Assembly: GCF_000150275.1 (NCBI RefSeq)
Contig: NW_002060949.1
Span: 542,786 to 606,785 of the forward strand
Direction of reading: 5' to 3'
Source of the DNA: Trichoplax adhaerens
Taxonomy: Eukaryota > Animalia > Placozoa
Length of the DNA: 64,000 nt
Under the pieces are notes generated by a model. It was not told the origin of the DNA. It saw only the letters and a program-made list of their open reading frames with translations, and did no database searches. Of the stretch, positions 16,345 through 63,995 are shown piece by piece (within the stretch, counting starts at the first letter, position 1; each line of letters begins with the position of its first letter). The translations under genes and the position numbers were made by a program.

Positions 16345-17460
16345 TATACAGTACTGTACACTATACAGGACAGTACCGTCTTGTGTACAAAAGGTGTCCA
16401 CTGGTTGGCAACACTATATACAGTGTGCGGTATACAGTACAGGATTGAATACAGCACTGTACCATACTGCACAAAATCAACTTTGCAGCTAGTGTAATTT
16501 GATGTCAATCGCGGAAAGTATAGTGTACTGTTTACAGACATGCAGAACACTTGAAATGACCGGTGAAATAATCAGCCTGGACATCATACAGTACTGTACT
16601 GTAATTAGTACAGTACAGTATAGTGAAAAACCGCTTGCTGTCCCGCCTCTTTCTTTTTACTAGTCGCCGAGGTATGGTATTGTACACTGTACAGTATACA
16701 GTGTCTATTTTGGATTTTTTCCAATTTTGGGGTCACATTGGGAGTTGGAAAAGTGACGTTTCATAGACCTCGACAGTACTGTATACTGCACACTAGTACA
16801 GTACTGTACAGTACTACATGTACTGTACAATACGTGTGACTACGGATGCATTGCCCAGTTTTAGTACTGTACTGTAGTTCGGATAATGACAGTACTGTAC
16901 AGTACGAAATTGGAGTGTACTGTACAGCAATGTTGTGCAATGCAGTGAAAAGGCAACCACAACCTGCTAAAACCCGATCCAATTGTTGATTTTCTAACGC
17001 GAAACGAGTGCAATCGCAAGCACTGTATGATGTCTGTATCACCACTGAGATTCTTAAGCCGAATCCCGCCCTCGAGTCGGTTTAAGCTTGACTTTGCACA
17101 TCCCTACAGTGTACACTGTACAGTACACTAGAAAGTTACAGTACTGTACAATACTGTACACTGTAAATGTAATTTTAATTTATTTTACAGTACTGCACTG
17201 TACAGTACTATACAGAAGTCAATGACCAGCTCACAGTACAGTACAATAGCAGTATTGGTGAATGCAGTCGTAGTTATACTGTCCTGTAAAACACCATTTA
17301 CACTGTTAAAATAGTAATTCCGTTTCCGTACCGTTGCGTAAAATACAGTACTGTACAGTACAGTTTCATCTACAGTAGTGTACTGTAGCTATCGTCACGA
17401 CAGTACAGGGTACATTGTACAGTACACAGTGTACACTGTACAGTACACAGTACTGTGGAT
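16345..17460. promoter_or_regulatory. TACAGTA/TACTGTA island A; divergent promoter of NIPBL and HMGCS
   Basis: Dense CAGTA/TACTG words and palindromes (TACAGTACTGTA; TACAGTGTACACTGTA at 17105-17120) between two head-to-head genes. Confidence 0.8.
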
Positions 17461-17553
17461 CATAGCTCAACCAGCTATTGTACTGAATCTACTCGTGCTC
17501 TTTACTCTTTTATTAGGTGCACGACGTCCAGTACGGTGCTTCTACCTTCTTTT

Positions 17554-17827
17554 GTGGTGTGACCCACCTTGTGACCTTTACAAGCAGCGATTTTGCTTTT
17601 AAGACAGGGTGGGCTGATTCGCCTGAAATCCATTTGCACAGCTGCATGCTTGAAGAAGCTGAAGGTAAAAGCTACTGGCGGTAGGTACCCCCAAAATGGT
17701 ATATTACTGCATATAGGTAGTATTGCATAGGCTAATTGTAAGCAGGCACTGTTTCAAATTGCTTTGCATTTTCTTCTACTGTAAATTGCAAGTTTATTTT
17801 ATTGATTCATTTCCGATATGGCGTGAC
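17554..17827. promoter_or_regulatory. Three sterol-regulatory-element-like sites near the HMGCS 5' end
   Basis: Reverse complements are GTCACACCAC (17554-17563), ATCAGCCCAC (17609-17618) and GTCACGCCAT (17818-17827). The SREBP consensus is RTCACSCCAY, so one is exact and two have one mismatch. Confidence 0.5.
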
Positions 17828-17884
17828 CTCAACTTATCCGATATTATCTGTCGAAAATTGTGATTAGATAAAAGCACAAGGAAG

Positions 17885-20800
17885 ATGGCAAATAATGGCA
17901 ATATTGGGCGGCCTCAAAATGTCGGTATAGTAGCGATAGAGGTATATTTTCCAAATTATTATGTCAATCAGGCAGAGTTGGAAGCACATGATGGCGTTGC
18001 TGCTGGCAAATATACCATTGGATTGGGCTTAAATAATATGGGCTTTTGTAGCGATCGTGAAGATATCAATTCCCTTTCTTTGACGGTCATGCAAAGATTA
18101 ATGGAACGAAATAATCTATCGTACGATCAGATTGGACGATTAGAAGTCGGTACTGAGACCATTGTTGATAAGTCCAAGTCGACAAAAACGGTCTTGATGC
18201 AACTCTTTAAAGATAGTGGTAATAGTGAAGTAGAGGGAATCGATACAACGAATGCATGCTATGGCGGAACCAACGCCTTGTTCAACTCAATCAATTGGGT
18301 TGAAAGTAACTCTTGGGACGGTATGTTGATCAATACTCAATAGTCATGACTCGATAACCATTTACATTTTTAAAAATATCATTTTTGAAGGAGTTTGTTT
18401 TTTGTGCGTGTGCTACACTCCAAGTTTATGGACAGGATCTATTTCCTTTTCTCACCTTTTCTACTTCATAGTCCTCGCGATCGTACAAGCACATCTCCAT
18501 CGATTTTACCCACATTGCCAAATAAACTAAAATTGATATAATTAGCCATATTGCAATTTTAGTTACGGCAATAGATCGTTTTGTCGTTCAAGGGAAAAAC
18601 TACAATACCAAGCAGTAACGTAGACGTCAGCAATTGAATATTTAATGCACAGTTTGCGCACACTGGATGAGTGTTAGATCGATGCCAGAATTTTTCCATT
18701 TGGTATTTCTATTGCAAATTATAATTTTAAACATATCAGGAATGTAGCTGTTATTGATTTATAGTTATAACATTGGAAGAAGACGCACAATATAGGCCAC
18801 ATTGTTACACTTTACATTTTTGTTACATTTTTTTTTCCAAGGTAGATACAGTATATACTGTACTTCTAGCCTACAGGGCCATGAAGGACTAAATCACATG
18901 ATAATCTAGTTTAGTAATCCATGCCAGGACTAAGGGGTACTTGGCCACTTCACGTTTGAGACATCATTTAATAACTCGCAGGAAAGGAATGGAGTACCAG
19001 TTCGTAGTTCTTACAAATTTAACGGATAGTACGCATAGAAATTACATTGCACTGTACATTTATTTCAAATTACTAATTTATTTACTGTCAATAATAAATC
19101 TGTTGGGATAAAATTTATACAGTATTGCCCTAATAGGGCATTGTTTAAAGTCAGCTTTAATTTAATGCACGCTACTGTACAATACTTTACAATTTGGAGT
19201 AGTGGCACAAAGGCAGATCTCCTTATGCATCCTCATGTTGCAAATGATTACTGCTAAAAGGTTGAAGATTAGCATGCAATGTGTAACTCACCATTCGAAC
19301 AGCTCTCGCTTTGTTGTTTCCCAATCGTTCAAGCCCGATGAAAGAAAAATAAATAAAAAATATTTATATAGTGCATACATACTAGCTAATTATGTTCTAT
19401 ACATATAAAGTAGCATGTAATTATAACGAAAAACTTTGAAAAGAATTTTTTTCTGCAATGACACAACAAGAGAGCAGAGCGTTAAGTTTCTTTAATTACA
19501 ATTTACATATGAGTATAGCAAACTTCTCATATTACATCATACATATACTACAAAACAATATATTGCACATGGTAAACCATCGTACACGTATTCGTATTCA
19601 TAAAATTTTATACCGTGTAAGATTGAAACAATTTGCTCATTGATTGTTATCAGTTATTAACCCATCGAACAGTAGCGATATAGTCATTAAGCAGTCATGC
19701 ATTGTTGTAACGATTAATATTGATGATGTCCGCGTAATAGTTTTGGATACTGAATGTCATATTGCTTGAAAATCCAGAAATGATAAGCAATCTACTGTAA
19801 CTTACAGTACCCTATCTTTCAATCTATTTAAACCATCTGATTCAATATTGTCGCCAGAGGATGTCTTCATACGTAATTCTACATCACAGCAATGACACAC
19901 CTAGGTGTGCTGTTGTCATGTCAACTATTCTTAATTAGTTTATATAAGAAATTAATCCAGTACTAAACGGTTTTAATCAATAATAATAAAACCTATATAT
20001 ACAGTACAGCTGATGTTCCGCAATATAAAAAACGTATACGCGTGTAACACATTTAATGCATAAAGTTAAAAAATTCAATTTTTGATCATTGATACAGTAT
20101 ACTGCTTGTTTTTACTTTATATAGGGCGTTATGCTGTAGTTGTATGTGGCGATATTGCGATATACTCGGTCGGCAGTGCTCGTTGTACAGGCGGTGCCGG
20201 TGCCTGCGCGATGTTGATAGGACCCGATGCCCCAGTTGTAATGGAAAGTAGTAAGTACTTTTAGTTAAGTATATTCTTCAAGCGTATTCATTCTATAAAT
20301 TATACACCGTAATATAAATATGTAATGACTATCACTGATGTACGCGTTCAAAATGCCCCTGCTCAATGTTAGTAATATATTGTGTGTTCATAAATAATCA
20401 TTAAAAGTTACTGTTGTTATTGCTATGTCAAAATATGCTCTCTAAATAATATCGTTTTCTTATATTTACGCAACTGAAAGGATTAAGAGGTTCTCACATG
20501 CAGCATGTTTATGATTTCTACAAGCCAAATATGACTTCGGAATATCCAACTGTCGATGGTAAACTATCCCTAACTTGCTACACAACATCGGTAGATAAGT
20601 GCTATCAACGTTATAAGGATAAAGCTGCTACAATACTGAATAAAAAGTAAGCAAGATACACTAATTACTTTGTTACATTACTTATTAAATATTGATGCAG
20701 AAATACTCATATATTATTATACTAAGTGATTACTGTTCCCTTCATATTCTTACAGGATAACGTTAGATACGTTTGATAAGTTTTGTTTTCATTCACCCTT

Positions 20801-21792: not shown

Positions 21793-23283
21793 TATATGCA
21801 AATTTAAGCAGTTAGAGTACTGATCTACTCTGAAGTGTCGTAGCTATTTTCTTTACGTAGTCTTGAAGGAATTTATTAATTACTATTGACTGAAATGACA
21901 ATGTTCCTATCGCTATTAATCGTCGTACGGTCATTTTTAACAGTAAAAGAAATGGGAACACCGGTTTGTAGTATTTAATGCCTGTTTGTGACTTTTTCAC
22001 TTTTTAACTCGATTTTGGTCTTAATTTTATATCACTTTCCGTATAATTTTATAGGACTAGGCATAGAGAATTACGCGTATATTTGCTTGGTCATATTAAA
22101 TGCAGTTTATTAACGTATTCTTTGATTTTCTCATTTTTATGCACTCTTTATGCACGCTTATTGATTGTATCATTCTTAATTGCTTAGTATTTTATTACAT
22201 TTACAGTTTAGGCAGGTTTCCTTAAATATGTAATAGCTACTTTGGATTGTTAAGTGAATGCAGCTACTATATTCGCACTAGACATATAATTTAGGCCTTT
22301 TATTGTATTAGCAATAAAGCTCTGACTGATTTACTCTTGAATTCTAAATGTCCATTTTGTGTATCAGTCGCGACAATAACTATAAATATTTACAATTCCT
22401 TTAATTATCATCATTGTATATATATGTTACATATGATGTAAGTACAGGAAACCGAAACGTATCATTAATTAATTGAAATATTGAATCAAAAAATTTGAAG
22501 ACTGCTATCTACATTTATCGCTGAATTTTATACTCCTACACTTCGTTTTAGAAACGTGTTGTACGCGTAGTTTGCGCATCGATACAGTTACAGAACTAAC
22601 ACTATCAGATGACCGACCCCTTGAGAATTGATGTAGAACAAGGTAACAAACCTCAAAAAAGGTAGCTTACAATATGTGCGTCTGTGCTTGTGTAGAGTAC
22701 TTTACGTACGTAGACGGATAGTTCATGAAACATCCATGTAATCCATAAACCGAATTAACAACGTAGAAGCCATTGAATTAAACAAAATCTGGCGTGTCAT
22801 AAAAAATTATATAAAATAAAATAATTATCGTGACACAGTAAAGAAAAAACATTAATTTAGAAAAAGTAATCGGGAACATTGCACAGTACCATACGACCCA
22901 TAAGTACCGTCATGGACTACAACAAAAAAAGACTTTTAGTCTATCTTTAGTAGTTCGTAGTACCGTACAAACAGTACGAGGATCAGATATAGGCGTACCT
23001 ATCTACTGGCACTTGCGCGTATGAAGTGCACTTATATCGAATCTTCTGAATTTTTAAGCTTTTTCACTACCGCAGCAAAGTGTAAATGATTACGGATGAA
23101 AGTCATAGGCAATAGAGCCAAAATTGGAACTTAAATAAAAAATTTGACATATTTTATAGATATTGTACACTATTATATAATGTACATTTGTACAGTATGT
23201 GGCATGAAGGTAGTTCGTATCAACTAGATGTTGCTAAAACTCGATACGACTATTTATCTCGACATCAGTGATCTCAGGATTAA

Positions 23284-30394: not shown

Positions 30395-30980
30395 CATGTA
30401 CTGTACGTAACACTCATACTAGACGTGTCTCATACCAGGGCCTCCATGACAACTTTCTCTATTAACTCCTGGTCATACCCGATGATCGTTAACTGTTTCT
30501 ATTGGAGGTACAGTACTGTACAACTCAGTACAAGAGCATACTGTTACTGTACAGTACAGTACACGATATACAGTACTCACGGATTAAAAGTACTGTACAG
30601 TGTACAGTACAGTACCGTATTTTTGTACTACTGCATACCGTACAGTACAGTACTGTATGCCGTCTGATGTAAAAACTGCACTGAAACCTTTTCTGTACAG
30701 TGCACAGTAGTACAAATCAGGTACGGTACTTGTACTGTGCTACAGTACAAGTCTACAGTACCTTGCACACTCAATCTTAGGATTGACCAAATTCGGGTTG
30801 GACCATAACTGTACTGTATGGCACTGGCTGACAGCACCCGCCCGAAAATTCAAGTATCAAGCAGTTTCCTGGTACTATCAACATACTGTACAACAATAAT
30901 AAATGTACAGTTTGGTGGTAGTTTTCACAGTAATATAAAAGTTTTAAGCTGTGATAGGTACAGCATTACTGTACTGTATT
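30395..30980. promoter_or_regulatory. TACAGTA/TACTGTA island B; upstream of MYSM1
   Basis: Same word grammar as island A (GTACAGTACTGTAC, TACTGTACAGTACAGTAC). It starts about 0.6 kb upstream of the MYSM1 ATG and lies just past the IPO13 3' end. Confidence 0.78.
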
Positions 30981-31354
30981 TAAGGGAATTTATTTATCAA
31001 TCATTAATTAACTAATTATATTATAATAATAATTAGTATCAACAAAAGTTAGTGTATAGCATTCCATACGGTAGACGTTAAAAATTGTACAATTACAGTA
31101 TACGTACATTCTTTACAGGAGAAAAAATATTCACGTCTCATTACTCATGTATAATTAGATATTATCTTATCTGATAAAATGACTATGTAAATGTTATAAA
31201 AAATATAATGTACAAAGTACGTTAGTATCTTGATTAAAATTTTCTCGCGATCGCAAGCTAATGCTATTGTAGTTGAGTAATTTTAAACTTAGCTAAGTAC
31301 TATATCAATAGCCAATGTTCATCATGATTACGACAGCGCCTACACAATGAGAGC

Positions 31355-38084: not shown

Positions 38085-38395
38085 CTACAGTACACAAGGT
38101 CTGCAAAACACAGTAGAATGTTTTTACTATAAAAAGACTGGAACTAAAGTAGTGCCTAAGATACTTGAGTGTAATACTAACAAAGCTCTACAGTACAGTA
38201 ACTATTCTCTACTGAACAGTGTCCGGCGCAAAAATTGCACATACGGATTTCGAATTTGATGACGTAACGGCGGCCTTCAGCCATAAACCTTGGACAGGAA
38301 GGATGGACGACTGTACTATACTGTACTCATGGTTTACAGTACTGTACTGTACAGTACGTATCGTGGACTGTGAGTACTGTACACTGTACAGTTTC
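38085..38395. promoter_or_regulatory. TACAGTA/TACTGTA island C; divergent promoter of IPO13 and ARMH1
   Basis: TACAGTACTGTACTGTACAGTAC (about 38335-38357), GTACTGTACACTGTACAG and CTACAGTACAGTA lie between the two start codons. Confidence 0.75.
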
Positions 38396-38417
38396 AAGAT
38401 ATTAATAAGAGCACTTC

Positions 38418-38431
38418 GTTACTATGGCAAT
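38418..38431 (-). promoter_or_regulatory. RFX X-box upstream of ARMH1
   Basis: GTTACTATGGCAAT; the reverse strand ATTGCC-AT-AGTAAC fits RYYNYY-AT-RRNRAC. Confidence 0.6.
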
Positions 38432-38856
38432 ATGCCATGATCAATGTTTTTAACTGTAACTTCAACTCAAAATATTCCATCAATCTTGGAATAAATCTAT
38501 CCATCATCTGGCCTATCAGACAGTGCTTATATCAGTAAATTAGTAAATTTATAAACCACAATAGTAGCCTACGATCTTGCACTTTCAACAAACAAATCTC
38601 TTCTATCGTTATATTGGACTAGAACTACAGTCATTGGCAATATTATTCAACTTAGACAGGTATTTCGCTGTAGAGCTCGCACTAGATTAAATGCGGTAGT
38701 AATATCCTACTTACTACTAATCAAACGTACACGAATTACTATATTAGAGATAATAACTTTTATGCTACAGTTTAACGTTCATTAAAATAAAATTAATTAT
38801 TATACGAATATTTATAAATGCGTAATATCCATACTGTAGTATTACACCAGAGAAAC

Positions 38857-41909
<3,053 letters not shown>

Positions 41910-46500: not shown

Positions 46501-49500
46501 GCTGGCTATACATTCATCAATGATACCGGCACTGATGATTTTTGCTTCTAAATAATCACACAACGTTAAGAGAAGGATAAGATTAGATTAATATTGAAGA
46601 TGTTACCATTTCGGCCAAATAAGATTATGGCGAGACAAAAGATTCATGGGCTTTGTAGAAAATTAAGCACAATCCAACCTTTATGAAATTGGTCTTGGCT
46701 CTCATTCTTATCTTCACGCGGTTGGGACCCATGGTTATTCTTAATCTTTGTAAATAATTGTTGTTTTTCAGTATCGGTATCATTTTTATTTTCTTCTTTT
46801 TCTTCTCGAGGAATATCAATGAATTTTAAGGATCCTTTGTGCTGCTTTTCAATTGATTCATAAAAATCTTCTTCTTCCTGATCCATTAATTTACCTTCTT
46901 CTAAATTATGCAACCGGTCGTAAACCTGATAGGGTATTAATATAAAACTATTACAATCTCACTTTCTTATAGCTTAAACCGATCATTATCTAAAATTGAC
47001 TACTATCATTCACCGTGGGCATATTAATGACCATTCTCATTCCTGTCGATATAGATACTGCATTTGTTTCATTATCTTCAGTAGGAATATCTGGACAAAT
47101 TAAAATCGATCATATTATACCTCGTATCTTATCATTTAAAAGTGAATTCAAATGCTTTCCAAGAGTAAACGTGCTCGTAGCTATTATATGTTGGCATTGG
47201 CGCAGAATAGTTGTGCGGTGTTCTACGCGTATATCATTTTGGCTTAACAAAGTTAAAATTATTTGATTAAAGATTCAGCCATACATCGGCATTTTTAACT
47301 GCTAATAATTTAGATGAGCTGATAAAAAGGATTTTCTAAATATAATTATAGTTCAGTTATGAATCTTATGGCACTGTAAAAATGAGTAAAAATCAGTTTG
47401 AGGTACTAGAATATTTTACGCTCTTCCCCATCTTCGCATACACAATAACTTACGCTTTGATTCAATTTCGCTTTCGCTCCGAAAGTCCACTCTGAATAGA
47501 AAATTAATCATTTTATTACTATATGGCACACTTTGGCATGATATCTCGTTATAAAGGTCTTACAAAATTATCATAAATATATTGTACAGTTAATAAGCAA
47601 ATATAATTTAGTTTATCTCAATAAATAGGTTAGTTTTATAACATCCGTCTGCACTACTGTACTTACGAATCGGATCGAATGTGAACCCAATAGCCTAATG
47701 GATTCCATCGAATTGAGCTTAACGTTATATAGCTGTATTTATTGATAGGAGAGGTTGATGCCAGTGAATTTGGTTCTAAGTAATCATGAAGAAAGACTAT
47801 ATTATTGTTTATTCAGTTTTAACAATTACTTTAAATCTTGTAACTAAATCAGTTATATAAAACCTGGTATTTTTATAGATATATAAACTGAACATGTATT
47901 GCCATTATCGTTATTTAATATCTTACTATCATTATTTTCCATTGTTAACGAAAATTTGGCCTCATACTTATAATATAAGTTTATTTATTGAGTGCCAATT
48001 TTCAAAATTATCAGAATCTCTTACGATATTGATCGAACACTTAAAATTATATGATGATTTGGACTTTAGTAGCGTATCGGTAGTGTATTTTCTATATTTC
48101 AACCTTTTTCTCAAGCTTCTTACTATATTACTAATTTAAATAAATGACATTGATAAAATATCTCTAGTACTTACTTCTGCTTGCATTGATAGCAATTAAG
48201 GCTAAATTGTCTGATGGAAGACTTATTATCCTTGCAACATACTATGAAATGAAATTAAGAATACTATCAGCTGTCTTCCATTCTCCGAAACCTTAAAACT
48301 AGCAAATATATCCGGCATTCTAATTATTATATTCCCCACAGGTATATCTTCAAAATTATTTGAAAATTCAATAAACTAAAGCAGCTAAGGCGTTAAAATA
48401 TTAACTTATGAACAGAAACCGAGTTTTTAAGCTATTTTACCTGTTTGTCAACGATAATTGGATCACCTACAGCTGTTAATGTAATAAAATTATTGGAATT
48501 ATAGGCAAAACGGGCTGATCTTCTTATTTAATCAAAAGCTTAATCAACTACTTGAAATACTAAAGTATACCAAAAAACCTTACTTGCTTCCTTTTGTACA
48601 TGCTTTACATTGGACTTCTGGCCCTTAGCTGATTTACTACGCAATAGCTTAGCTCTGTTGATACTAGATAGAAGAATGAGAGGGGAACATGTTATTCTTA
48701 ATTCATTATGTTCCATGTAGTGATAAAATACGTAACTTTATTGTATCTATCATAATGTTAGTTTGCTATCTAAGTATTGTATATATAGCATTAGAATGAT
48801 TTCAATTAAAAATGCACTAAAATTATTAGATATTTCTTACAATTTGGGATTAAGAGCAGGAGAAGAATGAGGTCGTGGTAGGGTTTTAGTTTCCTTTTCC
48901 TAAAGTTTCGGAATGCGAGCATTAGTAACTTAATAATTCTAAAATTAATCTATATAATCTTTACCATAACATCTCTGCTACGTCGAAAATTATCGAACCA
49001 TGAAATAGTATTAACATCTGTCAAAATTAATATAATAGGATTAGCAACATAAAACCAATGTATTAAAGTTTTCTTATCTTAACTCCATAATAATATATTC
49101 AAATTTAATGTGATAGTGTTACCATTTTTTCGCATGTATCAAAGTAAATTCGTTGAGATTAGAGAATATACATATATATATTTAGCGCTTAAGACTTTCT
49201 TGTATTAGTCTACACAGCAGTACTGTACACTTGAAATTGTTACTAGAATCTTATCGTTTATCATTTCAGTCCATATTTGTCATTTGGTAGTTTTCTATTG
49301 GACAGTATAACCAAAGCTAGTAGTTAATTCGCTATTTACCACTTTGAACTTCGGACCGTGAAGATATGTTTGCTAGTAAAGTTTCAGCCAAGACACGGCA
49401 AGCAACTTTAACACCAGCCTGCAATATAGTAGATATTTATAAAGCGGTCAAGATATTCACCGAATTGAATATTAATAAATATCGGACTGTAAAGGTTACA

Positions 49501-52500
49501 CTGATAGAGAGAAAAGATATGTTTATGCTATGAAGTTTAGTATTATAAGTAATAACTAGCTTTCATCTGTTGTAAGTATGTATTACCTGATATCCATCTG
49601 TATTTGCTATGGCATTAAACATAAGTTTTGGAATATTATAATTTCCGGTTGCAGCAGATATCATAGCTTCAACACCTTGTTTAATTCAGTAGTAATAAAA
49701 TATTTACTTAAAAATGTACTGTTGATTATAACAGATAAATAGCTAAATCATCAATAACTTTACTCCATCGACATCAGTTTATAAAGCTAATCCTCCTATG
49801 TTACGTACCAGGCTCACTCAAGTAACTACATAAAATTTCTGCACTTGGATAAATCATGAGTATAATTTTTTGCGCCATTAGTCGATAGTGAGGTTGAAAG
49901 CTAACATAAAAATTGATAAAGGTTTCATTTATTCATTACATCTAAAATAAACTGCAACAAAAAATTAGAATAAAACGGTCAATTATCATGTAAACGAAAT
50001 ACTCGGTCTACCTTGTATGGGTTTGGCGAAGTTTTCTAATTCGACTATGTTTAAAAAACGAACAAAATTATTTGCAAGAAGTTTATGTTCATTAAAATAG
50101 TAAATTATATTACTAATCAATTTTATCGATACATTAGATTTAAGTAATTGTAACTATGCCATAGATCTGGAATTGATTTTCCGCTAAACTTAAGATTCAT
50201 TTAATCATATAATAAATTAATACAGTTAAGCTATGTGCAAATATGGCTTATCGACTTACTACTTGTAGCTTTCTTTCGACATTGTGGATTTTTTATAAAT
50301 TTCGCCAATTAGATTATATAAGCAAATGAAAAGGTGTTGATTCAAGTGATTGTCCTGAAAAAATTATCTGACATTGATTATAATTGGCAAGGTAATCGAA
50401 GTGAAGCAATGCTAGGATTCTAATTAGTCTTTATTATGCTGGACTGCAGACATAAAAAATACCAAAACAAGTGATCTGTTTTGTTCAAAATTTAAATAAT
50501 CTTTATCTAAATTCTCTCTGCTAAGTTATATAGAATTGCTTAAGTTAGACATTACATATTCGAGCTTGGAGTTCATTTAAAATGTTAATTTAAACTTTGA
50601 TTTTCCTTAAACTAAAATCGTACAAAAACTTGTGTATTTAAAGTGAAATAATTATAATATCTATCATTTGGTACTAATATTATCAACTCTTCTGACTAAG
50701 TATAAGATTGTTTGGACTAAAACCATGTCTATAACGCACTAACAATTATACCGTTATAATCTAGTGAAAGCTCTATATGGGGAATTTAACAACCCAATCA
50801 CGTATCATGATTATAGGTACATACAGTACATGATTAAACATACCTCATTGCTTTCCAGGTCGATTTGGACGGCTCCAAAGATTACTGATATTAACTGGTT
50901 GATTAGATCCGATGATAGATGAAAAAATTTTATAACTTCTATGGATCTATAATAACAGTAAGAACATAACATAATGCATTCGATTTAATACTATAGAATT
51001 GGCCAAGGGTTTTCAAGATTTAATATTTCACAATAACGTCATTATTTCGGAAAATACATTTTCTTATTAACTTACGATGAAGACATACAATAATTACAGA
51101 TGCAATTTATAGGTTATAATGCTCTAAAAGTATCATCTGTAGAAGGTACTTCATCAATTTTTATTCCTAAGATATCTTTTCGTTTACTACAACAACGTAT
51201 TATCTCAAGATACAGAAGTGAACAAGTTTTTTTTACCCAATTTCTAGTAATTTAGTAGCTTTTAATGTTTCCGTAATAATTTTTGAAGGTAAGTCAAATA
51301 GTTGTTTTGCCTGGACGAAGATAGAAAAACATGTCGAAAATCATCAATCTTATCTTGTATAATGGACATAAATGTTCAACTGCTGTACTCGTAAATTATT
51401 CTAACTAAATTTGATTTTGGACATGAAAATAGTGGTAAATTGAGTCTTTAGAAATAAAATAGTTTAACTCACAATAAGTAAAAACAATAGTCTGTGGATA
51501 AGTTTTCGATATTGACTTCGATACACTAGTAATTCTTCTACGCCTAATAATTCGTAACGATAGTTACGAAATTTCTTCTCCCTATTATGATTTGATAAAT
51601 TTAGTAAGTAGCGCAGTGATCGAGATAATAAAGTATGGTATTATTCTCATATAAATATATTGTTAGCTAGTCTATTAATTGATGATTATTCTTAGTCAAT
51701 ATTTTATTAATTAAAGGCAAGTTATTATAATTCTACAGTCACATACTTTATTTTTTAAATCATATAACTGAAATATTGCCATATAATGGAAGGATATCGA
51801 ATTGACATACCCTTTATTAGCTTCGGATGCTAGTTTTACTTCTTGTTCAAAGTTATAAGCTAGATAGATTAGTCTTTTCTCATCGATTTCTAAATTTTAA
51901 ATTTAAATATAGACGTCAATTATCATTTGTTATTCAAACTTACAATCGTGTTAGAAATGATACACAATAGGCAATGACTAAAAATACGATACCTTGGGTC
52001 GGCGTAGCATAGACAGGCATATATTTCATCATATGCATAGCCTAAAGTAGTCGCATATTTTCAATACGAATATTTTTACTGCTTAACAAATATAGAGCTT
52101 AAAGGCACAAAGTAATTTTTATAGAGTAATAAAGACTAAAGATTTTACAGTGTGTAAAGATTACTGCATAGCGAATTAAATTATGAACTGACAGTAAATA
52201 TGTCAGTAACCTCATTTATTCTATATTGTAATGGACGTCACGATCTATTAAATACACATATTTCACTCACCTTTGCCCCATAAATACTAGAGTTTGCCAT
52301 ATCTTTTAAATAAGATGGCACAAAGTAATATGTCTGAGCGAATCTTCTCGTCTAAGGTATCAATCATGAACGATAAAATGTGACATTCAGTAAATACATC
52401 AATATAGTGATATACCCTTTCTGTGCATTTATATAAAGCCGTAGCAAAGTTTATGGTGTTTCTATTGGAATGAAAGGTAAATTGCGAATAGTGGATTTTT

Positions 52501-55220
52501 TACTTTTAATACTTACATAATGAAGCCAGACTATCAAAATAATTAACTAATTAATTACAGAAGAATTTATACGCCATTACTACTAGGGGTTAGTTTTAAC
52601 TAAGAATTGGATAACTAGAGTTTTATGTTAATGCAAGACTTACAGATTTATGGGTTATATACCTGTCGCCGCTACCAAAATCTGATATCGTTGCAGCAAT
52701 TACTTTACGTAGATGTCATTTAATACTAACTGATACTTTCTATAGGATTTTATTAAGCTTAACTTTCAGTTTGACTGCATAATTTATGAAATACAATAGA
52801 GCTTATTCGTATTACATTGAATTATAATCGGGGAATACCCCATAACATTATCCTTCTACTCTGGAAAGTCACTCATGAAGCCTTTTATTACAGTAGCAGT
52901 ATTAAAACGGCCTAATTTATAGTTAAGATGAATCTAGCAAAATACACTCATACGGGTAGTCTAGTGGAATTATTACTGTTAAAATATCTAACAGTAACAG
53001 CTGAATATACAGTAAAGAATTTAATTTTCTTATTTTAGATTATCTTTTCCTGCTAGTAAATTGGGAAATTTAGAAAAATTTTCTAAATGTGTATTCGGTA
53101 AGTGCCATAAGAACAATATAGTTTATAGCGTGATATCTTACCATTGGTCTTTTGGAGTTAGCGGTTTTAAAAAAATTTTCAACTCGTTTCCGCTCATAAG
53201 CTAGACAAATTAATAAATTGTTGTTAGCGTTTGAAATTATTTGTAATATACTCGTGTAATTTTCATTCTAAGACAAGAAGAAATAGGCATAACTAAACAA
53301 TTACTGATAGCTAGATAATATTCGTCATTTTAGCATTTTAAAATATAAAGCAAGCAATATAATAAATCATTAGCTGAGTAATTATACTAGAACATTAAGT
53401 TCAATTATTGAGGCTATTAATAACTATATATTTATATATGTCATATTATAGAGAGACAGTAGGGGGAGAGATGAAATTTTAATTGTAAAATTTGATAGTT
53501 AGTAGACTGAAAAGTATCTCTTCTACTAAGGAGTTGATATGCATATCAAGCGTCAAATTGAAAATCAGAGTAGGTATGTAATGATCTAAGTTTTCAGAGT
53601 GAATTTACATTTGAAAATTCAAAATTATAAATGCTTGTGCTATTGCCAGAGCTTCATGCTAAAACTTACTTTCTCTATAAATTAGCTTATTGGCACATCT
53701 CTGAATATATTTTGTTTGCCATATAAAGAATAACTAGTCAGAGTTATTGTAAGATTTAATTATATTATGACAAGGATAGTCTACTAATGTTAATGATATA
53801 TCAAAAAGATACTAAAATATATGTAGAATTTATAAAGTGAAATATTGATCATATTAGCAGGCTATTTTATTTCGAGCTATTTGGCTTATTTGCTAAAAAA
53901 TTTCATTAAGGATCACATCAAATACAATTTTGCAGCTTCAATCATTTCAATTATTTAATCTTGCTAGAAAATAGTTATGCATGACAAATAATCAATACTT
54001 TACATACATGTCACAAATTTTCCGTCAAGCATCCACATATATGGCAATCCATCAATAACTTGTGCACGATCTGAAAGCGGTTAAAGTAGAACATGTAAGA
54101 AAGACATTATTTGTGAAGTACTACTGTTTTCTACGCAGTTTAATGTCAGGAAAGCGATGATAGTGATTCCAAAGATAAATTAAATGTATTGAATTTTAAA
54201 ATAAATATCAAGTACTTTATGTGAAGGAAGGATAATTAAAAAATTATGTAGTATCTTTGTTATCCATAACGACTAATCCACCACGACTTTGATACTAAGA
54301 CTAGCAAAATTAGTAATATTTGAAAAGTTATACGTACAATTTGGATCTTTCTCTAATTCTTTATTGCCATAGAGACATAAATCTAAGATATGTACATTGC
54401 GTAAATGCTGCAGATCCGTCCAAGATATATTATTATTGGCCAAGTTAATGGTTCCAAGAGAGTAAAAACACCCAAAACCTTCTAAGCATCGAATCTAATA
54501 GAACGGAATACGATGTTGCTGATGATAAATTACGTTTATAATAGATGCAGATTTTAAAGGGTGTAAAATCTTTTAATATCCTGTCGATGTCATTGTTGTA
54601 CAGTATGGTTAAATGAATTAACGATATCGGTAGCTATATGTTAGTAAATCACTTTAAATGGACGTTTAAACGAGTTTATTATAGAAATAAATTATTATCA
54701 AAGCAACAACATAAAGGAAAACTCCTTACCCTATTGCAACTTAGATCTATTTTCCAAAGTTCACGACAACGGATAATAGTAGTTAGAATAGCATCAATAT
54801 CATTTTGGCTGGCAAGGATTGTTTGCAGTTTTGGACAAACAGACAAATTTTCTAGTGATACTGTAACGAATTGTATTGCAAAGAAAGATTAAGCAAGTAC
54901 GCTATTTTATAGAGTTAAAAACACAATTTTATTGCTATATCTGGGACGTTATCTTAATATTGATGAGTCTAAACAAATTTTATAGTTATAGAGCAGTCCC
55001 CTCTTACCTAATTGACGATCCGATAGATCGATATATACAGCATCAACTAAACGACAACCAACTTGTGATCTTAACAACTGAAAAGGAAGTAAAAAAATTA
55101 AAATCATTACAATACACTAAATTGATTTTAGTCGTTAATTCGAAATATTTACTGCTACGCTTATAATGTTCGTCGAAAATATGTAGCGTAGACATGATTT
55201 ACCTGTTTGGTAATCTTCAT
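43530..55220 (-). CDS. Uncharacterised protein with N-terminal SDS22/U2A'-like leucine-rich repeats and LRRcap, a helical middle and a long low-complexity C-terminus
   Basis: The spliced reading is MKITKQ-LLRSQVGCRLVDAVYIDLSDRQL-VSLENLSVCPKLQTILASQNDI..LWKIDLSCNR-IRCLEGF..LGTINLANNNI..LDLCLYGNKELEKDPNY-RAQVIDGLPYMWMLDGKFVT-SYERKRVENFF. Further minus-strand exons include the ORFs at 46913, 46563 and 44826, ending in AANKNR-TAA at 43532-43530. The start codon and some internal exons are uncertain. Confidence 0.8.
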
Positions 55221-56996
55221 AATTTAATCATAAATTTTAAGAGCAAACACATATCATTAATAAGTGCATTAGTAACAAAAATTGTGAGACAACTTGCTGA
55301 TAATTTTATGCTTGAATCGGCGTATTGCTACTTCCACTATTGTTTATTGTCTTTGTCATAGTGACTATTGTTGTGCGATTAAGGTCAATAGCAGATTTTT
55401 GGAGTCCTTAATATGTTAAATTAAGACCCATGCCAATGAATAACATAGAGTTGAATAGCATGGGCACTGTCTGTTGCATATTATAATTAGCATTGATTTG
55501 TAAACGGACAATTATACGCCAATACACAGTTATTTTACCTTGCTTTAATAGCATTCTAATACTAAGATATATTTACTATGGTTACTAGAGTGGGCACTGA
55601 TTGCAGACTCATATCTTTACTACTCCATTTTTTGATGACAGTATTCATTTGTTTTCTTAAAAAGTAAAATGGTCAGAATTGCTCATGTCGCCTTCTTATA
55701 ACGAAAAATTGATATAGTCACGCAACTAGAGATTTTTTGTAATAAGATAGACACGATAATACGTTAATAGCTATCCAGGCTGTGACTTTTTTAACTTTAT
55801 ATTCAAGTGATGATCTAATTATCTTTAAAAATTTTATATATTCGATAGGTAATGGTATCGCATTAGTAATTTATTGTTACTAAAATAGCTATCATCAGCT
55901 ATGAGAAATAAATAAATAAATTATGTCGCATTATGTTGTGTAATATATGAATAGCGATTGATTAAACACTGCCATACTTATGCATGTTAGCTTCAATCGA
56001 ACTAAAGTCCAGACTCTTTAATAAAGCTGAAGTGAGATATAGCAGTATCTGATTAAGAGATGAGAATTTTGTATCAAGGGAAATGTAAGAAATAGCTACA
56101 ACTTAATAATTTGATGATATAGCACGTATAATTTCTTATCTCGACAGTTTAGTAATGAAAATGTAACCTTAAAATTTATGCCAAAAGCACTGTACCATCT
56201 TATCCCAAATGTAAAGGAGGTATATTCATCAATGATAGGAAGCCTATCATTAAAAAAGTTATACTATAACTAAGTGAAATTTACTTCCTTAGAGACGTGA
56301 TTAGCGAAATTATGAGGCTAATTATAATTATTAGAGAACCTGTAACTAATTTTGTGAAGCTGCCGTGCTAAATATTACCCCACTAAAGGTGTACGAATTG
56401 TGATTGATATTCTATCTGGTACGTGGAGATGGCACGTCGTTTTACTGGCACAAAAAAACGCGAAGGTATGAACACGTATGCTATAGCAAAATCAAGTGTA
56501 AAAAACAGACTGTTTAATGGCTTGTATTTGTACAATTGTACTATGCATGATCATCCATGAACCCATTTCCGGTTACGTAATCGTCTGTTTTACACACAAT
56601 CATCATTTGCAAGTATTTTATCTTAGTTATGAGTCATGATCTGTCGGCAAGGCGACGTGGTGTTGGACTAGTCTTAATAATTTCAACAGATTACACAATC
56701 ACGTAGGGTGTAATCACTTAGGGTGATAGGATATTGTTCTTATTCTATTGCCAGCAGCGTAGGCTATAAAACTATGTCGTAAAAAAGTGCAATTTGCTGC
56801 CTCCCCGTTGTCCGTACCATAGCACATGAAGATCCTAAAAATATACGCACTACAGGATCTCCAGTCTTCTCCATAAGCACTGAAAAATAAGTATTGATTA
56901 AAAATATTATCCATGCGAAATTGGCATAACTCGTTGCTCGCTTATCAGAAATTTTAAAAATCTCAGCAGTTTCTCTTTGAGTGAGTTTAAGCTGTT

Positions 56997-57010
56997 GTTG
57001 TCATAGCTAC
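56997..57010 (-). promoter_or_regulatory. RFX X-box upstream of the LRR gene
   Basis: The minus strand GTAGCT-AT-GACAAC is an exact match to GTHNYY-AT-RRNAAC and abuts island D. Confidence 0.62.
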
Positions 57011-57034
57011 GACGATTGCAAGCCTCTTACAGAA

Positions 57035-57990
57035 CTATATACTGTAAACTACAGTACAGTACTAAATTGCAGTGAGTGACTACTGTACTGTACACTATCG
57101 TACTGTACTGTAGTGTTGCGGGTCCGAAGAAGCCCTGTTTTCTCAACTTTTAAATTAATTTTTCCATCTCAGCCTAGACATACTGTACTCGTAATGGGTA
57201 TAATAAATCAATAGTACAGTATGTCATCGCCAGCATGAGCCACATATATTGGTAAATTACAGTTAGCGCTTAAAAAAAAGTAGTTTAAAATTGCAGTTCG
57301 TGGAAGCAACTAACATACTGTACATACAGTACAGTACTGTACAGTACAATGCTGGTAATACTGTACTGTACTGTACAGTATACTGTACTGTACTGCACAC
57401 TGTGCACACTACAGTACGCTCGTGATAGCTTATTTTGTACAGTACTGTACAGTACTGTATACAGACCGATAGTACGACGTGACTTTTAAAATTGTTGGAA
57501 GCGACCGCACATGTAACAACGACTGATAGTTTGTATTAGGAACTTGAAAGAATAGAATTATTCAATACTACGATATAAAGTAATAAAAATATAAAGAATC
57601 TATTGCTCAAGGTTGTACTGATCTGTCTGCATGGAATTTGAGCCAAATTTAAAGACATAATTTAAGACAACGTTATAGCTGAACATCTTTCAACCATTTT
57701 AGAGGGTTCACCACGCCCCGGTAATGCTACAGTTGTACAGTACTGTATACAGTGTACAGTACAGTATAGTCTGTAGTGCAACTCTTCACGGCGCTCAGAT
57801 GGCGGACGGCGGGATACCGAACTTGCAAGAGTTAATCGTGCAGGCCAGGCCAAGCCAAGTTCCATGATACCGTATAGTAACGTACTGTACACTCGTACAG
57901 CATCCAGTACAACTGTACATGATAGTTACTGCTAGCTAGGCTCACTGTTACTACTTAACATCCCATAGTAATGCAATATACTGTAGCGGA
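57035..57990. promoter_or_regulatory. TACAGTA/TACTGTA island D; divergent promoter of the LRR gene and KAT14
   Basis: Examples are TACTGTACTGTACTGTACAGTATACTGTACTGTACTG (about 57359-57395) and TGTACAGTACTGTACAGTACTGTA (about 57436). Confidence 0.8.
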
Positions 57991-58141
57991 AAGTCTTCAG
58001 GGGAAGGAAGCAGCTTTGCAAATCTTGCACAATTGAACCCGCCAATATTAACTTTCAAGGTGCAAGCAGCATTATGTGCAAGGACCGATCGATGATCTTA
58101 CCACAGTTATAGGAATCACTTAGCTTTTGCGCTGGAAAAGT

Positions 58142-61100
58142 ATGAGCAACAGTAAGCCAGGAAGCAGCTGCTATTGTGGTGAAGAGATCTCGTTGGAGCG
58201 TGCTCATCAGTAAATACGCCTAAATTAATAATGATTGTGTTGGCTTTTATAGGATTAGCCTTGTAATCATTTGTAGGCTATGTATACTATTCGTCTTGCA
58301 TACTCTGATGATGTATAGGTATACAGGATATGTTATACACTACGTTAGTAGCTAAAAATATTATTTATCTTCATCATTTTTGTAGGAATAGCTTAAGATG
58401 TAAAGTATGCGTGAGTTGGTTCCATCTCGGTAAGTACTACAGTAAACGTTAGAACTGAAAGCTTGTGTGAACTATACAACTAGGAGTGACATAATTAATC
58501 GAGCTAAAGCTAAAAATTTATTCCGACGTAAGAAATGATAGTTACTGTATCGTACAGATTAAAAATGACTAGTGCTTTACAGAAAAAAAATATCAAATAC
58601 TGAATACTGATAACTCGTAATAGGGTTTATGACGTAACTTTGTAATCAGCCTAATATTCGGTAAAACAATCGGTAAAATAACCGACACATACTGAATACA
58701 CTATTACTCTGCATAAATTGTGCACCTACCACTAACGTTGTGGTTCTGACTCATGGCTCTGATAAATATAATTATCAATTGTAATGGATTTTGAAATTGA
58801 TGATGACAATTTGATCGTGTCTAGCCTGTCTAAAAGATAAACCACCAACGGATTTGGACAACGATATATTTTTTGAGTTGATATGTCGGAATTGTGATCC
58901 TGATGGTGTCGAAAAGTTTATCCGATTGCCTATGAACTGGTATTTATAGTAAAATGTCTCATGCATTGGCTATCTGTAGACTCTATTTATTAATAAATTT
59001 TATATCAGATAAAGTTAACTACGATTATAAATTAAATTCTAGGCTGCAGGTTGTGCATTTAACTGTATATAACTTAAGTCGCGCTGGTAATAGTCGCCAT
59101 GGCTACTTCAGATGGCGCGAAGATATCTGCGGTTTTATTAATAAACATTGGGATACGCTAATGGCTCATAGGTGAGCAGAAATTTTTTCATAGACTAATT
59201 CTGTATCTGTCTATCAAATAAGCGATAGGCTATCCAAATCGATTAATATAATATACAGTATGTGTATCCAAATTATAGAGTAAGACAATTGTTATCATAC
59301 TGTGCTATAAACTAAAAATAAATTAAAGATAGACTTGCTCTTGATTAAAATATTGCTAAATTTTCGAATTTTATTCAGCGTGCATGCCTAATTACATATT
59401 ATGTATAATCGTCATGATTAGAAAACGCACTGCATCGTGGCATAGCACTGTTGCTGGAGTATTATCTCTTAACTGCCCTCAAAAATTTATTTCCGGAACT
59501 CGAGAATTTAATGAGCCAGGATGGTGGACTTTAGCTAATAAAGAACCTCCAACAATTGACGTAGATTCACTTGATGCTATGAGTAAACAATTACTTTTTA
59601 ATACTCTATATTAACTATTCGTGATTATATGGCATAATAGTACGTTAATCTTTGATGCTATTAGTCTATTTTATCAGTTATTCTACCCTTGCTAAGTTTG
59701 ATAATTGCATTAATACAGTATTACAGTTGATTCAAGTTTATTTAAAAAAAGCGATCTACATGCTGTTATGTTAATTCAACAGCCTGCGGTAACTGAGGAG
59801 TTTAGTCTTTCCGGTCAGGAATATTTTCGTGCGATAGTAAATACTGTATAGTCAACTGAAGATTCGATAGTTAACTGCAGGAAATGTTATGATGTACTGT
59901 TGGTAATACAGTAGTATTATTTATGTATTGTATTATTGATTTCTGTGACAGGATGAATAACTGCATTAAATACCACTATATGAATAGTGATTAAAGATTT
60001 TTCCATAATGGAATATTTTTTTGTAAATTTAGGTAATAGCTTACAAAATAAGAAAAGAAGAAATTCAACAGTATCATCGTCTGATGATGGATTAGAATTA
60101 AGACCACGAAAAATAAGAAAAAGTGATCAACTTAATAGCTCAAATAACCTTAATCATCATGCGGATGAAAAAATGGTTAGTATTAATTATAGATATATAG
60201 TAACTACAAATGATCAGTTTACAGTACTGTAAGTTGATAGATTTTTAAAGTGGTAAATAGTAACCATAGTACGTTATATGTGCAATGACTTGAATCCTCG
60301 TGTAGGAGGAGACTGTTGATTTCTCTAATGTTAGCAGTTCGCAAAATGAGAAATGGCTAAACGAACGTGACATCACTGTCGATGGTAAATTCGACTTCTG
60401 TATTGTAATAACAGATTTATACTTAAACGTTTTTTGATTAAATTACATTTATAATCACTTTACGAAGTATGCATATATCGAATTGCCTAAAGTACTGTAC
60501 TTATATAATATTTTAGAAACATTACCTGAAACTATCATGGCTGAAGAAGATCCTGGAACTAATGATGAAAGTAACATTATAAAAATAATTATCGTTACGA
60601 TAATCTTTAGTTAGAAATCAAGGACACATTTCAATTGATATTAATGTTGACTTAATACTGCCAATAGGCAACTCACAAAGAACGAATTCACTGATGTCAA
60701 CAAATACTAGACAGCCTGCTGGAAAAACTGTTAAATCCCAAAATAGTTCTCTTGATATGCGAAAACCAAAGTAATATACGATTTATGTAAAATGATGGAA
60801 TAACCTGAACAACACTTGTCGGTCTTACCAAATACGTTAAGGGTAACTTACTGTAATATTTGTATATGAACAAAGGTTAACTTCACTCAGGCCACATGAA
60901 GAGAGAAAATTATTAAAGTCGTTAAGTATTTACCTACCATTAGTGAAAGAAAATCCGAAACTTTGCAGAATTTATAATAAGTTACTCCTTCGCCAGGTAT
61001 TGTTCAGTCCTAGTGATTAATATCATAATCTTAATCTTATACTTTGTCCCTTTATTTGATTGGCTTTACTTCAACGGTACTATTATTGCAGGTTAAACGT

Positions 61101-62717
61101 GATAAAGGATTACCAGTGTTCGATTTGGACAGTTGCATGCTTAACTATGCCTGTAATGTCAATAGGTGTAGCACAACTGCTGACTGCGACACCATTGTAT
61201 CGGTACGTTATATAACAGTAGAATCAACGTTGTGTGTCGTGAGCAAGAAATAATAAAGAATATTCTGTACGGTCTCTACGATGTGAAGTACAGTTTATAC
61301 ACGCTTGCAGGTGGCAATGTGTTAATAGATCTTATTCTGCAACTAGGTACCAGACGTTAAACCTTTCAGATTAAAACAAAAGCGTAACGGAGGAACGTCT
61401 TGGAATGAGGTTATAGGCGCAGCTGTTTCTTATAAAATGATCTATGAAACTGATTTGAACTGTAACGTAAAACACAACTAGCTACTTTTAATGTAATAAA
61501 TATTCTCCATTACTTTAAATTTACCCCGACATACAGTTAATATCAAATGACCCGTCTATTGGAATATCTTCTACGAATACTGTCAAATCTAATATACTTG
61601 ACAGATTTCAGGTAATCTGATATTCGTTGCTCTTACTGGTATAGTTTTATTTTTATATACCGTACTTGATTATGCATGCAGTGAATTGACTACGACTACG
61701 ACATGTTAAATGATGGGTAGATCGCATAACTTGATCTAGATTGAGTTATATTCTATTTATATTTTGAAGGTTAAAAAACATCAAAAAGCTTTTCATCAAG
61801 TAAAGCCTCAATCTTTTCTTCAATACTTGGTTGGATCGAATTACGAATCTTCTACTCATTCCATTTGTAGTCCATATACCGCTAGGTATACTTCTTTAAA
61901 AGTACAACTTGAAAAGATAAAATTCTTATGTAATCAATCTATCCTTTCTCAAGGGTACTGAAGCCATTTATATGGAGAGATTACTCCTCAACTCCTCTGA
62001 AGCTCCAATTATTACAAGAAATAACTTCCTATCATCATAAAAGGTAACAAACATCAGCATGCTAGTGAATTTTCTTTTTCCCTAACTCCTACACGATCTG
62101 ACTTAATAACTTAGTAGCTACTTTAGAAAATGCTATTAACTTTAGTTAATGCCTAAAATTGATTTATTGATTTATACTTGCAATATAGGAATCAAGATCA
62201 AAATTCTTCCGATTCCAATAGTATTTTTACTCCTGCTCCCATTGATTACTGTTATGTTAGACCTCATCATATTCCGATTGTGAATAGTTTGTGTCGAGAA
62301 TTTTTTTGGCCTGGAATAGATTGTACGTCAATGGCTTACGTATAATAATTGTAATTTTAAGATTGAGAATCAGAAATGAGTATCGAAATGAATACACAGC
62401 ATCTCATTACGTCTTTCGTATTTCGGCAGTGTCAGAATGTTTAGAGTATCCGGATTTTAGTGTTGTAGCTCTTTATCGGTAAATATAAATAAACTATTTT
62501 CAGTAGAACAATTGTATACTATGTTCGTATTACATTATTTTTGATAAAATATTACAGGGACCTTCGATTTTCTTTTGCTTTTAGGAGGCTTATTGTAGGC
62601 TTTGCATTTATGACACCGGATGTGAAATATCATGAAGCTTACGTCTCATTTATTTTCGTGCATCCCGATTGGCGAAGAGCTGGTATTGCAACATTTATGT
62701 TGTACCACCTGGTTCAG
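58142..62717 (+). CDS. KAT14: Lysine acetyltransferase KAT14 / CSRP2BP (ATAC2), 3'-incomplete
   Basis: WLQVVHLTVYNL..GYFRWREDICGFINKHW..STVAGVLS..EPGWW matches the CSRP2BP winged-helix region. The GNAT domain reads PIDYCYVRPHHIP.VNSLCREFFWPGIDLSECLEYPDFSVVALYR..EAYVSFIFVHPDWRRAGIATFMLYHLVQ. The terminal exon is not visible before the N gap. Confidence 0.94.
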
Positions 62718-62889
62718 GTTGGTATAGGAGCGTACGTTATTGTGATATTTAAGGATCCTGGCATGATCGCTTTAATATGAGTTTTGATATTGCATAATAT
62801 GGTATAACAAATCATGATTAAAATTAGCCCTCCACGTTTATTGATTTTTCTCAAAGTAGCAGTTTTACATGTATTGAAATATATACATC

Positions 62890-62939
62890 NNNNNNNNNNN
62901 NNNNNNNNNNNNNNNNNNNNNNNNNNNNNNNNNNNNNNN
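62890..62939. other. Assembly gap (50 N)
   Basis: Run of N. Confidence 0.99.
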
Positions 62940-63106
62940 TTTACAAAGGTTAAATCCGTATTTTTGCTTAAGAGACAGCAATATAATAAAATATTCAGTT
63001 AAATCGAGCTCATATCTAATCGAGATACAATGATTCGCATTACGGTAGCTTATTACGTCTGCTCTCACTGGCACTGTCACAAAAGCTCAAGTTACTAGAG
63101 CATAAG

Positions 63107-63139
63107 CAGGGACTACTAAAGAGAAATTAGTAGTTCCTG
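63107..63139. repeat. 13-bp inverted repeat (hairpin)
   Basis: CAGGGACTACTAA-AGAGAAA-TTAGTAGTTCCTG, with one G-U pair on the + strand. Confidence 0.7.
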
Positions 63140-63644
63140 GTCTAACTTTCGTTGCTCTCGGTTAAAAAATTTAATTTATTATAATTATTATTGGGATGCA
63201 AAATGCTGTGCCAATAGCAAATCAAAAAATTTGAACTCTCTACCCTTATGTTTGCATAATCGCATCAATAGTACATATGTAGTGTCTGGTCCTTCTAAAA
63301 ATAATATAATGAAATAAATTAGATTTTTCTGCTACGAGAGCCAGCTTAATCAAAAGGGAACGGGTAATAAGAATTGAGTCTAAGATAGCACATCGTAACC
63401 TTAGCCCGTAGGTAGAGCTGCAGGCTACGCTCTACGTGTTTTAGTGATGATACAGTAGCAATATCAAGTTCAGCTCAATACAGCAAAATGAAAAAAAAAG
63501 TGTTACGGTTAATAATAAAGTCTCCATGGCCTAACCATTATAATTTATATATATATTATAATTTATACTATGTTTTACTGCAATCAAGAAATTTAAATTT
63601 CAGAACATCATCATGGTGCTGAGCTGAGCGTAATTTTGTACGGT

Positions 63645-63995
63645 AAAATACAGTAGAGACCCCTAGAATGTACTGTACTGTACAGTACTGTACACTGTAT
63701 GGTACAGCATGCATACCGAAAACATACTGTACAGCACAGTAATCACACTTGGTCCGTTGTAGAATGTGGAGTACAGTACCGTAATTATGGACATACTGTA
63801 CTGTACAGTGTACAGTACAGTATGTATCGTTTATGGTGAACTGTACAGTACTGTACTGTACAGTAAAGTTACTGAATTGCTTTACTCTTTTTTTACTACA
63901 GTACAGTATGTTTTGTTACGGTACTAAAATTTCAGAAGGTTTGTACTGTACCGTAGTGTACAGTACTGTACAGTACGAGCACTGAGTATTTACTG
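63645..63995. promoter_or_regulatory. TACAGTA/TACTGTA island E; predicted promoter near the right edge
   Basis: GTACTGTACTGTACAGTACTGTACACTGTA and CTGTACAGTACTGTACTGTACAG, with the same grammar as islands A-D. No downstream gene is visible in the window. Confidence 0.65.

Follow-up and report, generated by a model that had tools for sequence, protein, structure and literature searches.

The window analysed here, a stretch of 64,000 nucleotides (nt) of the Trichoplax adhaerens genome (assembly GCF_000150275.1, contig NW_002060949.1, positions 542,786 to 606,785), contains five islands crowded with the heptamers TACAGTA and TACTGTA (together TACWGTA). These islands are the promoter-associated (ACAGT)n repeat of T. 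adhaerens, which is already known. They lie at the 5' ends of genes, separated from the start codons by a few hundred bases and often flanked by divergent genes, and their best reading is a lineage-specific repeat marking constitutive promoters. We put at roughly 60% the probability that the published (ACAGT)n islands act there as homotypic clusters of a symmetric site. A preliminary description of the window had proposed the islands as a candidate genome-specific promoter code of which it knew no earlier account, bound by a general promoter factor or acting as a structural element, and had considered that they might mark constitutive promoters in place of CpG islands.

Distribution of the islands between gene classes

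The distribution of the words was compared between housekeeping and cell-type-restricted gene families. N-terminal domain exons were located genome-wide, and the 2 kb upstream of nine genes per family were analysed, the proteasome and CCT families representing housekeeping genes and the class-A G protein-coupled receptors (GPCRs) and DEG/ENaC channels (ASC) representing restricted ones. The upstream word density was 7.7 and 7.8 per kb in the housekeeping families and 0.37 and 0.53 per kb in the restricted families. At least five words within 2 kb upstream were present at 14 of the 18 proteasome and CCT loci and at none of the 18 GPCR and DEG/ENaC loci (Mann-Whitney p = 1.2e-6, Fisher p = 1.6e-6). 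Two of the CCT loci are possibly allelic contigs, and removing one of them left the result unchanged. This split between gene classes indicated that the islands mark constitutive promoters and not promoters in general. The idea of a constitutive promoter mark thus passed the comparison, whereas a general promoter code did not, since the cell-type-restricted families were devoid of islands. In the housekeeping set, the words became sparser over the final 400 nt in front of the first domain exon.

The repeat itself has been described before. Wang, Zhang, Meyer and Bao (2010, Biol Direct 5:18; PMC2871265) reported pentanucleotide repeats as the commonest class of Trichoplax microsatellites and (ACAGT)n as 78% of them, with 54% of the ACAGT repeats lying at most 1 kb and 85% at most 5 kb upstream of a gene. 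Genes with ACAGT repeats were enriched for translation and protein modification (kinase genes), and a transcription-factor binding site was proposed for the repeat. The novelty supposed in the preliminary description is therefore lost, as this 2010 paper already covered the repeat, how abundant it is, where it lies relative to genes and its possible role as a binding site. The islands share with the published repeat the pentamer, the genome, the extreme abundance and the upstream position: they are built of a tandem ACAGT/ACTGT unit, are exceptionally abundant and lie mostly within 1-5 kb upstream of genes. However, the earlier paper described a microsatellite of one motif, whereas the unit found here is TAC-W-G with a near-random centre and very short runs, and these runs are grouped in islands of 0.3-2.4 kb each with unique spacers. 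The Chimaera Hi-C network (NAR 2026; PMC12817080) learned repeating ACGG and ACAGT motifs de novo when trained on Micro-C maps of Trichoplax, and in silico insertion of ACAGT altered the predicted maps; this is the same motif, but the result was obtained in silico only and without a link to promoters or gene class. In the literature searched, no further description of the word in other spellings or of placozoan promoter motifs was found, nor a protein binding the Trichoplax word. The feature is hence not new, and what is added here is the internal logic of the unit, the exclusion of a mobile element, the housekeeping-specific distribution and a larger assembly gap.

Abundance and anatomy of the repeat unit

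Word counts in the window were compared with first-order Markov simulations of the window, and the reversed word served as a control. TACWGTA occurred 182 times (16.2 ± 3.9 expected) and GTACWGTAC 64 times (0.4 expected), and the reversed control word was not enriched in the window (8 vs 16 expected). When TACWGTA words separated by gaps of at most 200 nt were joined into islands, the five clusters reported previously were recovered at their places (Table 1). About two thirds of the window's TACWGTA words sit in these clusters and in a weak sixth one. The density was 34-37 words per kb in the islands and about 1.0 per kb elsewhere in this AT-rich window (about 32% GC), with 0.25 per kb expected. 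The two convergent 3'-3' intergenic regions (21800-23280 and 41910-43530) and the exons held single words only, as had been claimed.

In the whole genome (105.6 Mb in 1,414 contigs), two-unit 14-mers of the form GTAC-W-GTAC-W-GTAC were counted 16,635 times, with the centres AA in 4851, TT in 5064, AT in 3495 and TA in 3225 cases, and the reversed controls gave 0-3 copies. For the palindromic two-unit 14-mer, with 3,495 genome copies, the reversed control gave 0. ACAGT and its complement ACTGT, when in register, are the same pentamer TAC-W-G with an A or a T in the centre. Because the centre is near random between A and T, every TAC-W-GTA heptamer is near-palindromic and its orientation carries no meaning. 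The two orientations noted previously are one in-register pentamer, and no island showed a consistent strand bias of TACAGTA against TACTGTA. The spacing of GTAC by 5-7 bp was confirmed, 5 nt being the commonest distance (322 cases) followed by 7 nt (51), and the three nested palindromes named previously were found in 16, 11 and 1 copies. The statement that the islands are not simple tandem repeats was half right, as their building blocks are brief tandem runs of a single pentamer. The window contains 59 perfect in-register runs of 10-26 nt, and a 200-kb sample of the same contig contains 182, the longest of 40 nt.

The centre base of the unit behaves differently from the other positions. The centre was A in 158, T in 144, G in 13 and C in 7 cases (A or T in 302 of 322), and A/T mixing at the centre amounted to 40-50%. 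Genome-wide, 60% of neighbouring units had the same centre base and 40% were mixed, and the lengths of same-centre runs fell off almost geometrically. At the fixed positions, 50 one-mismatch variants (ten internal sites) stood against 106 perfect 14-mers, i.e., about 5% per site. If the centres had been mixed to 40% by unselected point mutation only, almost no perfect flanks would have survived; the combination of a mixed centre with kept flanks therefore suggests either that the flanks are under selection or that the units are born with a random centre. Long uniform runs as in a classical slippage microsatellite were not found, since 40% of the neighbours differ and the longest perfect runs reach only 26 nt (window) and 40 nt (200-kb sample). 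Dyad-symmetric strings of centres were not in excess either (21 of 79 four-unit windows palindromic, 19.75 expected).

Arrays with G or C in the centre (GTAC-S-GTAC-S-GTAC) are rare, with 210 copies genome-wide, and 43 of the 50 listed were uniform (GG or CC), as ordinary slippage predicts. A second unit of 7 nt is common and nearly always self-complementary, with AGT or ACT between the GTACs in 33 and TGT or ACA in 5 cases; its core was CAGTG or CACTG in 42 cases and CACAG or CTGTG in 3. Perfect arrays make up about 25% of the island bases, and the remainder is unique, slightly GC-richer DNA (about 40% GC). ACGG was 3.3-fold enriched in the island spacers, mainly in the form of GTAC-G-GTAC variants. 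An open reading frame running through an array had no match when used as a protein query. Direct duplications of 24-160 nt, with 80-100% identity, are present within several islands (Table 1), which indicates that islands grow by local segmental duplication besides pentamer slippage.

Proposed function and competing explanations

A symmetric site, read by a dimer or through DNA shape, would account for the free A/T centre, the avoidance of G and C and the preference for self-complementary variants. In this proposal, the site repeated in the array would be read by a candidate, probably dimeric factor, or DNA shape itself would do the work; slippage and local duplication would drive turnover of the arrays, and selection would keep GTAC-W-GTAC. 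By analogy with other promoter words, the effect might be that constitutive promoters are kept open and insulated. In Drosophila, CGATA clusters (BEAF-32/DREF) and GA repeats (GAGA factor) occur at housekeeping promoters, in open chromatin and at domain boundaries; these words are short, are found in both orientations and cluster within a few hundred bases of housekeeping starts. The Trichoplax islands resemble such clusters in consisting of one short word in both orientations at the starts of housekeeping genes, and differ from them in the self-complementarity of the word and its strict 5-nt phasing. Placozoan housekeeping promoters form accessible hubs and carry a Mutator-derived motif (Kim et al. 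2025, Nature; PMC12221973), which likewise lies at broadly expressed Trichoplax promoters and is tied to chromatin loops and to a transposon. This motif from Mutator terminal inverted repeats, termed the ACGG repeat (PMC12817080), differs from ACAGT.

The symmetric-site model, which we infer, also fits the gene-class result and the Micro-C modelling. Several points weigh against it: 4 of the 18 housekeeping loci had few words, an island lies 2.6 kb upstream of one gene for a voltage-gated K+ channel, the Chimaera deep-learning result may simply reflect the promoter location of the repeat, and a purely mutational origin that randomises the centre base may be an alternative. The genome of Trichoplax is small, about 100 Mb, nearly free of transposons and without enzymes for CpG methylation, and its regulation is mostly promoter-proximal. 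A single self-complementary pentamer at its housekeeping promoters offers a rare simple handle on constitutive promoters and insulation in an early-branching animal. The free centre with kept flanks, the rare uniform G/C arrays and the sharp gene-class split sharpen the search for a binder and the comparison across species.

Among the competing explanations, a neutral by-product is possible but unlikely. A mutationally favoured pentamer would then arise and spread where chromatin is permanently open, through slippage and local duplication, without any promoter role. The internal duplications, the modest 60:40 excess of same-centre neighbours, the uniformity of most G/C-centred arrays and the small share of perfect arrays in the island bases are all consistent with such a process. 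However, plain slippage gives uniform runs, whereas here the perfect runs are short and the centre is mixed far beyond the other positions, so that selection or a centre-specific mechanism is needed; the gene-class contrast is also very sharp, though open chromatin alone could yield it. A structural role independent of protein, in which cruciform or hairpin extrusion or flexibility would exclude or position nucleosomes, appears quite improbable. Single strands of four of the five islands folded better than dinucleotide shuffles (z = -3.0 to -4.1, compared with -0.7 to -1.6 in three control regions), as follows from the self-complementarity of the word. Moreover, the unit is rich in TA and CA/TG steps, which are flexible DNA steps, and it repeats every half helical turn. 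Nevertheless, the centre strings showed no excess of dyad symmetry, and the stems are short (10-19 bp) and interrupted. Copies of one miniature inverted-repeat transposable element (MITE), transposon or satellite family inserted near genes can hardly account for the islands, although the words recur in every island and crowd many of the unplaced contigs of about 1 kb. With the pentamer runs masked, an all-against-all BLASTN search among 24 islands in 264 kb returned only weak matches of 29 and 49 nt between loci; the other alignments were duplications inside or directly beside an island, and no inverted terminal repeats or target duplications framed the islands. The earlier judgement that the islands are not alignable copies of one element, such copies having been named there as a refuting observation, was thus upheld.

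Scars left by cut-and-paste transposons would explain the heptamers. Repeated insertion and excision of Tc1/Sleeping Beauty-type elements at TA sites in open promoters would leave TA-CAG-TA or TA-CTG-TA, each event adding 5 bp in register with a random centre, and the canonical Sleeping Beauty footprints are TACAGTA and TACTGTA (PMC6943129), identical to the island heptamers. The 5-nt register and the near-random centre are predicted by stacked scars, and both footprints are found at nearly equal centre counts with neighbours 60:40 same and mixed. G/C-centred units are predicted only via mutation followed by slippage, and the excess of CAGTG/CACTG over CACAG/CTGTG cores fits a full overhang joined to a trimmed one. 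Candidate sources are scarce, however: genome-wide there is a single DDE_3 match and there are four matches to a Tc3-type helix-turn-helix (HTH) domain, the sole open frame lacks CAG-ended inverted repeats, and 11 inactive mariner/Tc1 fragments have been listed (PMC2871265). The non-palindromic minor footprints known for Sleeping Beauty were not clearly enriched beside canonical units, with TACTA/TAGTA (centres C + G) counted 19 times against 14 for the non-footprint variants (T + A) and TACATA/TATGTA (CA + TG) 10 times against 6 (CT + AG); only the palindromic TACGTA stood out (n = 24). None of the eight footprints reported for Sleeping Beauty exceeds 7 nt, roughly 1e5 fixed events would be required, and the symmetric-site model accounts for the same palindromic variants. 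With identical heptamers, but with the source element not found and the minor spectrum not clearly matching, stacked scars are an improbable origin. Slightly less credit still is given to the extended form of this idea, in which the islands would be a fossil record of promoter-targeted transposition, with 5-bp scars stacked by the tens of thousands at permanently open promoters and, once the transposon was extinct, retained or recruited as a symmetric promoter word. The DDE_3 frame (G000:C1409:3537595-3538671, L023:1195-2271) has 358 uninterrupted residues with a weak Tc1/mariner match and could be a domesticated or decayed transposase.

The islands are not CpG islands in composition. Their GC content is 37-45%, and the observed/expected CpG ratio is 0.81 in the islands and 0.94 elsewhere, so that the undepleted bulk leaves nothing for an island to stand out from. 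The analogy drawn in the preliminary description therefore stands for the position only: like vertebrate CpG islands, the arrays are compositionally distinct blocks at constitutive promoters. Placozoa possess DNMT2 only (PMC8821070).

Islands of the window, neighbouring genes and assembly

The coordinates of the islands, of the exons beside them and of other features are given in Table 1. A codon-usage exon finder trained on 18 long open frames was too weak for gene mapping; instead, single exons were searched one by one against Pfam.

Table 1. Features of the window and internal duplications of islands in sampled pieces (window positions unless a piece is named)
Feature	Position	Strand	Remarks
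Island 1	16347-17445 (blocks 16347-16924 and 17119-17445)	.	33 TACWGTA words
Island 2	30399-31100	.	20 TACWGTA words
Island 3	38086-38381	.	9 TACWGTA words
Island 4	57040-57985 (blocks 57040-57459 and 57736-57985)	.	31 TACWGTA words
Island 5	63451-63975, window end	.	22 TACWGTA words; its gene lies outside the window
Weak sixth cluster	4078-4506	.	6 TACWGTA words; outside the range of the preliminary description
DEG/ENaC channel, N-terminal exon	856-1494	-	ASC profile 1-184
Cohesin-loader-like exon	8446-9564	-	Cohesin_HEAT and PDS5-type HEAT repeats; 5' end towards island 1
HMG-CoA synthase, first coding exon	17885-18343	+	Pfam positions 1-139 matched from residue 9
Importin-13/transportin-3-like exons	32720-33915	-	Third TPR domain at higher coordinates than the fourth
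DUF5578 protein, first coding exon	38818-39063	+	Profile positions 12-72
Gene beside island 4, most 5' exon in RNA	57925-58209	+	Assembled RNA contig
Same gene, later exons	58824-58938, 59042-59168, 59419-59582, 60033-60174	+	RNA contig
GNAT exon	62493-62777	+	Pfam
Assembly gap	62890-62939	.	50 N; outside all islands
Internal duplication	L011:6987-7142 with L011:7273-7433		Sampled piece
Internal duplication	L014:8921-8956 with L014:9246-9281		Sampled piece
Internal duplication	L015:6544-6587, 6781-6821, 6925-6968		Sampled piece
Internal duplication	L019:8595-8627, 8755-8787, 8939-8971		Sampled piece

Island 1 is flanked by the minus-strand cohesin-loader-like gene and the plus-strand HMG-CoA synthase gene, and island 3 by the minus-strand importin-13/transportin-3-like gene, whose order of TPR domains places its 5' end towards the island, and the plus-strand DUF5578 gene. 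Island 2 lies upstream of a gene to its left, assigned to the minus strand by open reading frames only, and adjoins the 3' end of the importin-13-like gene. Island 4 is flanked by a minus-strand gene and the plus-strand GNAT-domain gene. In the region 43530-57010, three open frames of this minus-strand gene (44374-44826, 46207-46563 and 46644-46913) had no Pfam match. For the plus-strand gene, an RNA contig extends as far back as 57925, within the last block of island 4, although the end of a contig is not a mapped transcription start. The claim that all seven genes other than the DEG/ENaC gene have an island upstream was borne out for five by protein-family or RNA evidence, and for the other two it follows from the strand of the open reading frames only. 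No island was found within 2.5 kb upstream of the DEG/ENaC gene.

The start codons of HMG-CoA synthase (ATG at 17885) and of DUF5578 (ATG at 38818) lie about 425-440 nt beyond the edges of islands 1 and 3, respectively. In both of these genes, whose ATG is mapped, nearly the same distance separates the last array word from the start codon (17445-17885, about 440 nt, and 38381-38818, about 437 nt). Within the sampled 200 kb, RING, HECT, HOOK, nucleoprotein-TPR and Kv-channel genes had islands on their 5' side; a TGF-beta gene had a weak cluster only, and a second ion-channel gene had no island in about 17 kb upstream.

The first exon of HMG-CoA synthase had its best relative, 88% identical, in one Logan contig (run SRR30664517; L022), which probably belongs to a different placozoan lineage. 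Arrays were absent from the 262 nt available in front of its ATG, which is uninformative because contigs break at arrays. Compared with a sister strain, 17 substitutions were counted in 5.2 kb and none within the array 57730-57985, too few to gauge the turnover of the array.

Many unplaced contigs of about 1 kb (C8 to C491) are packed with pentamer arrays, and contigs from public runs are split into pieces of 76-190 nt at the arrays. The pentamer repeat appears to be one of the chief reasons why the assembly breaks, and the island lengths in the assembly are probably underestimated.

The assembly gap was examined by aligning contigs of public runs to 57025-63024. A sister-strain DNA contig of 10,339 nt covers 57677-62884 and continues for 5,131 nt without matching 62940-63024. 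In both strains, the right flank 62940-63024 belongs to a separate 1.4-kb contig, which covers about 650 nt of the gap on its left side and stops on its right side where island 5 starts. As the two flanks lie in different contigs, the sequence on either side of the gap is not continuous, and the missing stretch measures at least 0.65 kb and probably exceeds 5 kb. The plus-strand GNAT-domain gene has RNA contigs that extend into the gap, which indicates that this gene is incomplete in the window and that its 3' part is missing. Finally, the larger gap removes the supposed closeness of island 5 to the GNAT-domain gene.

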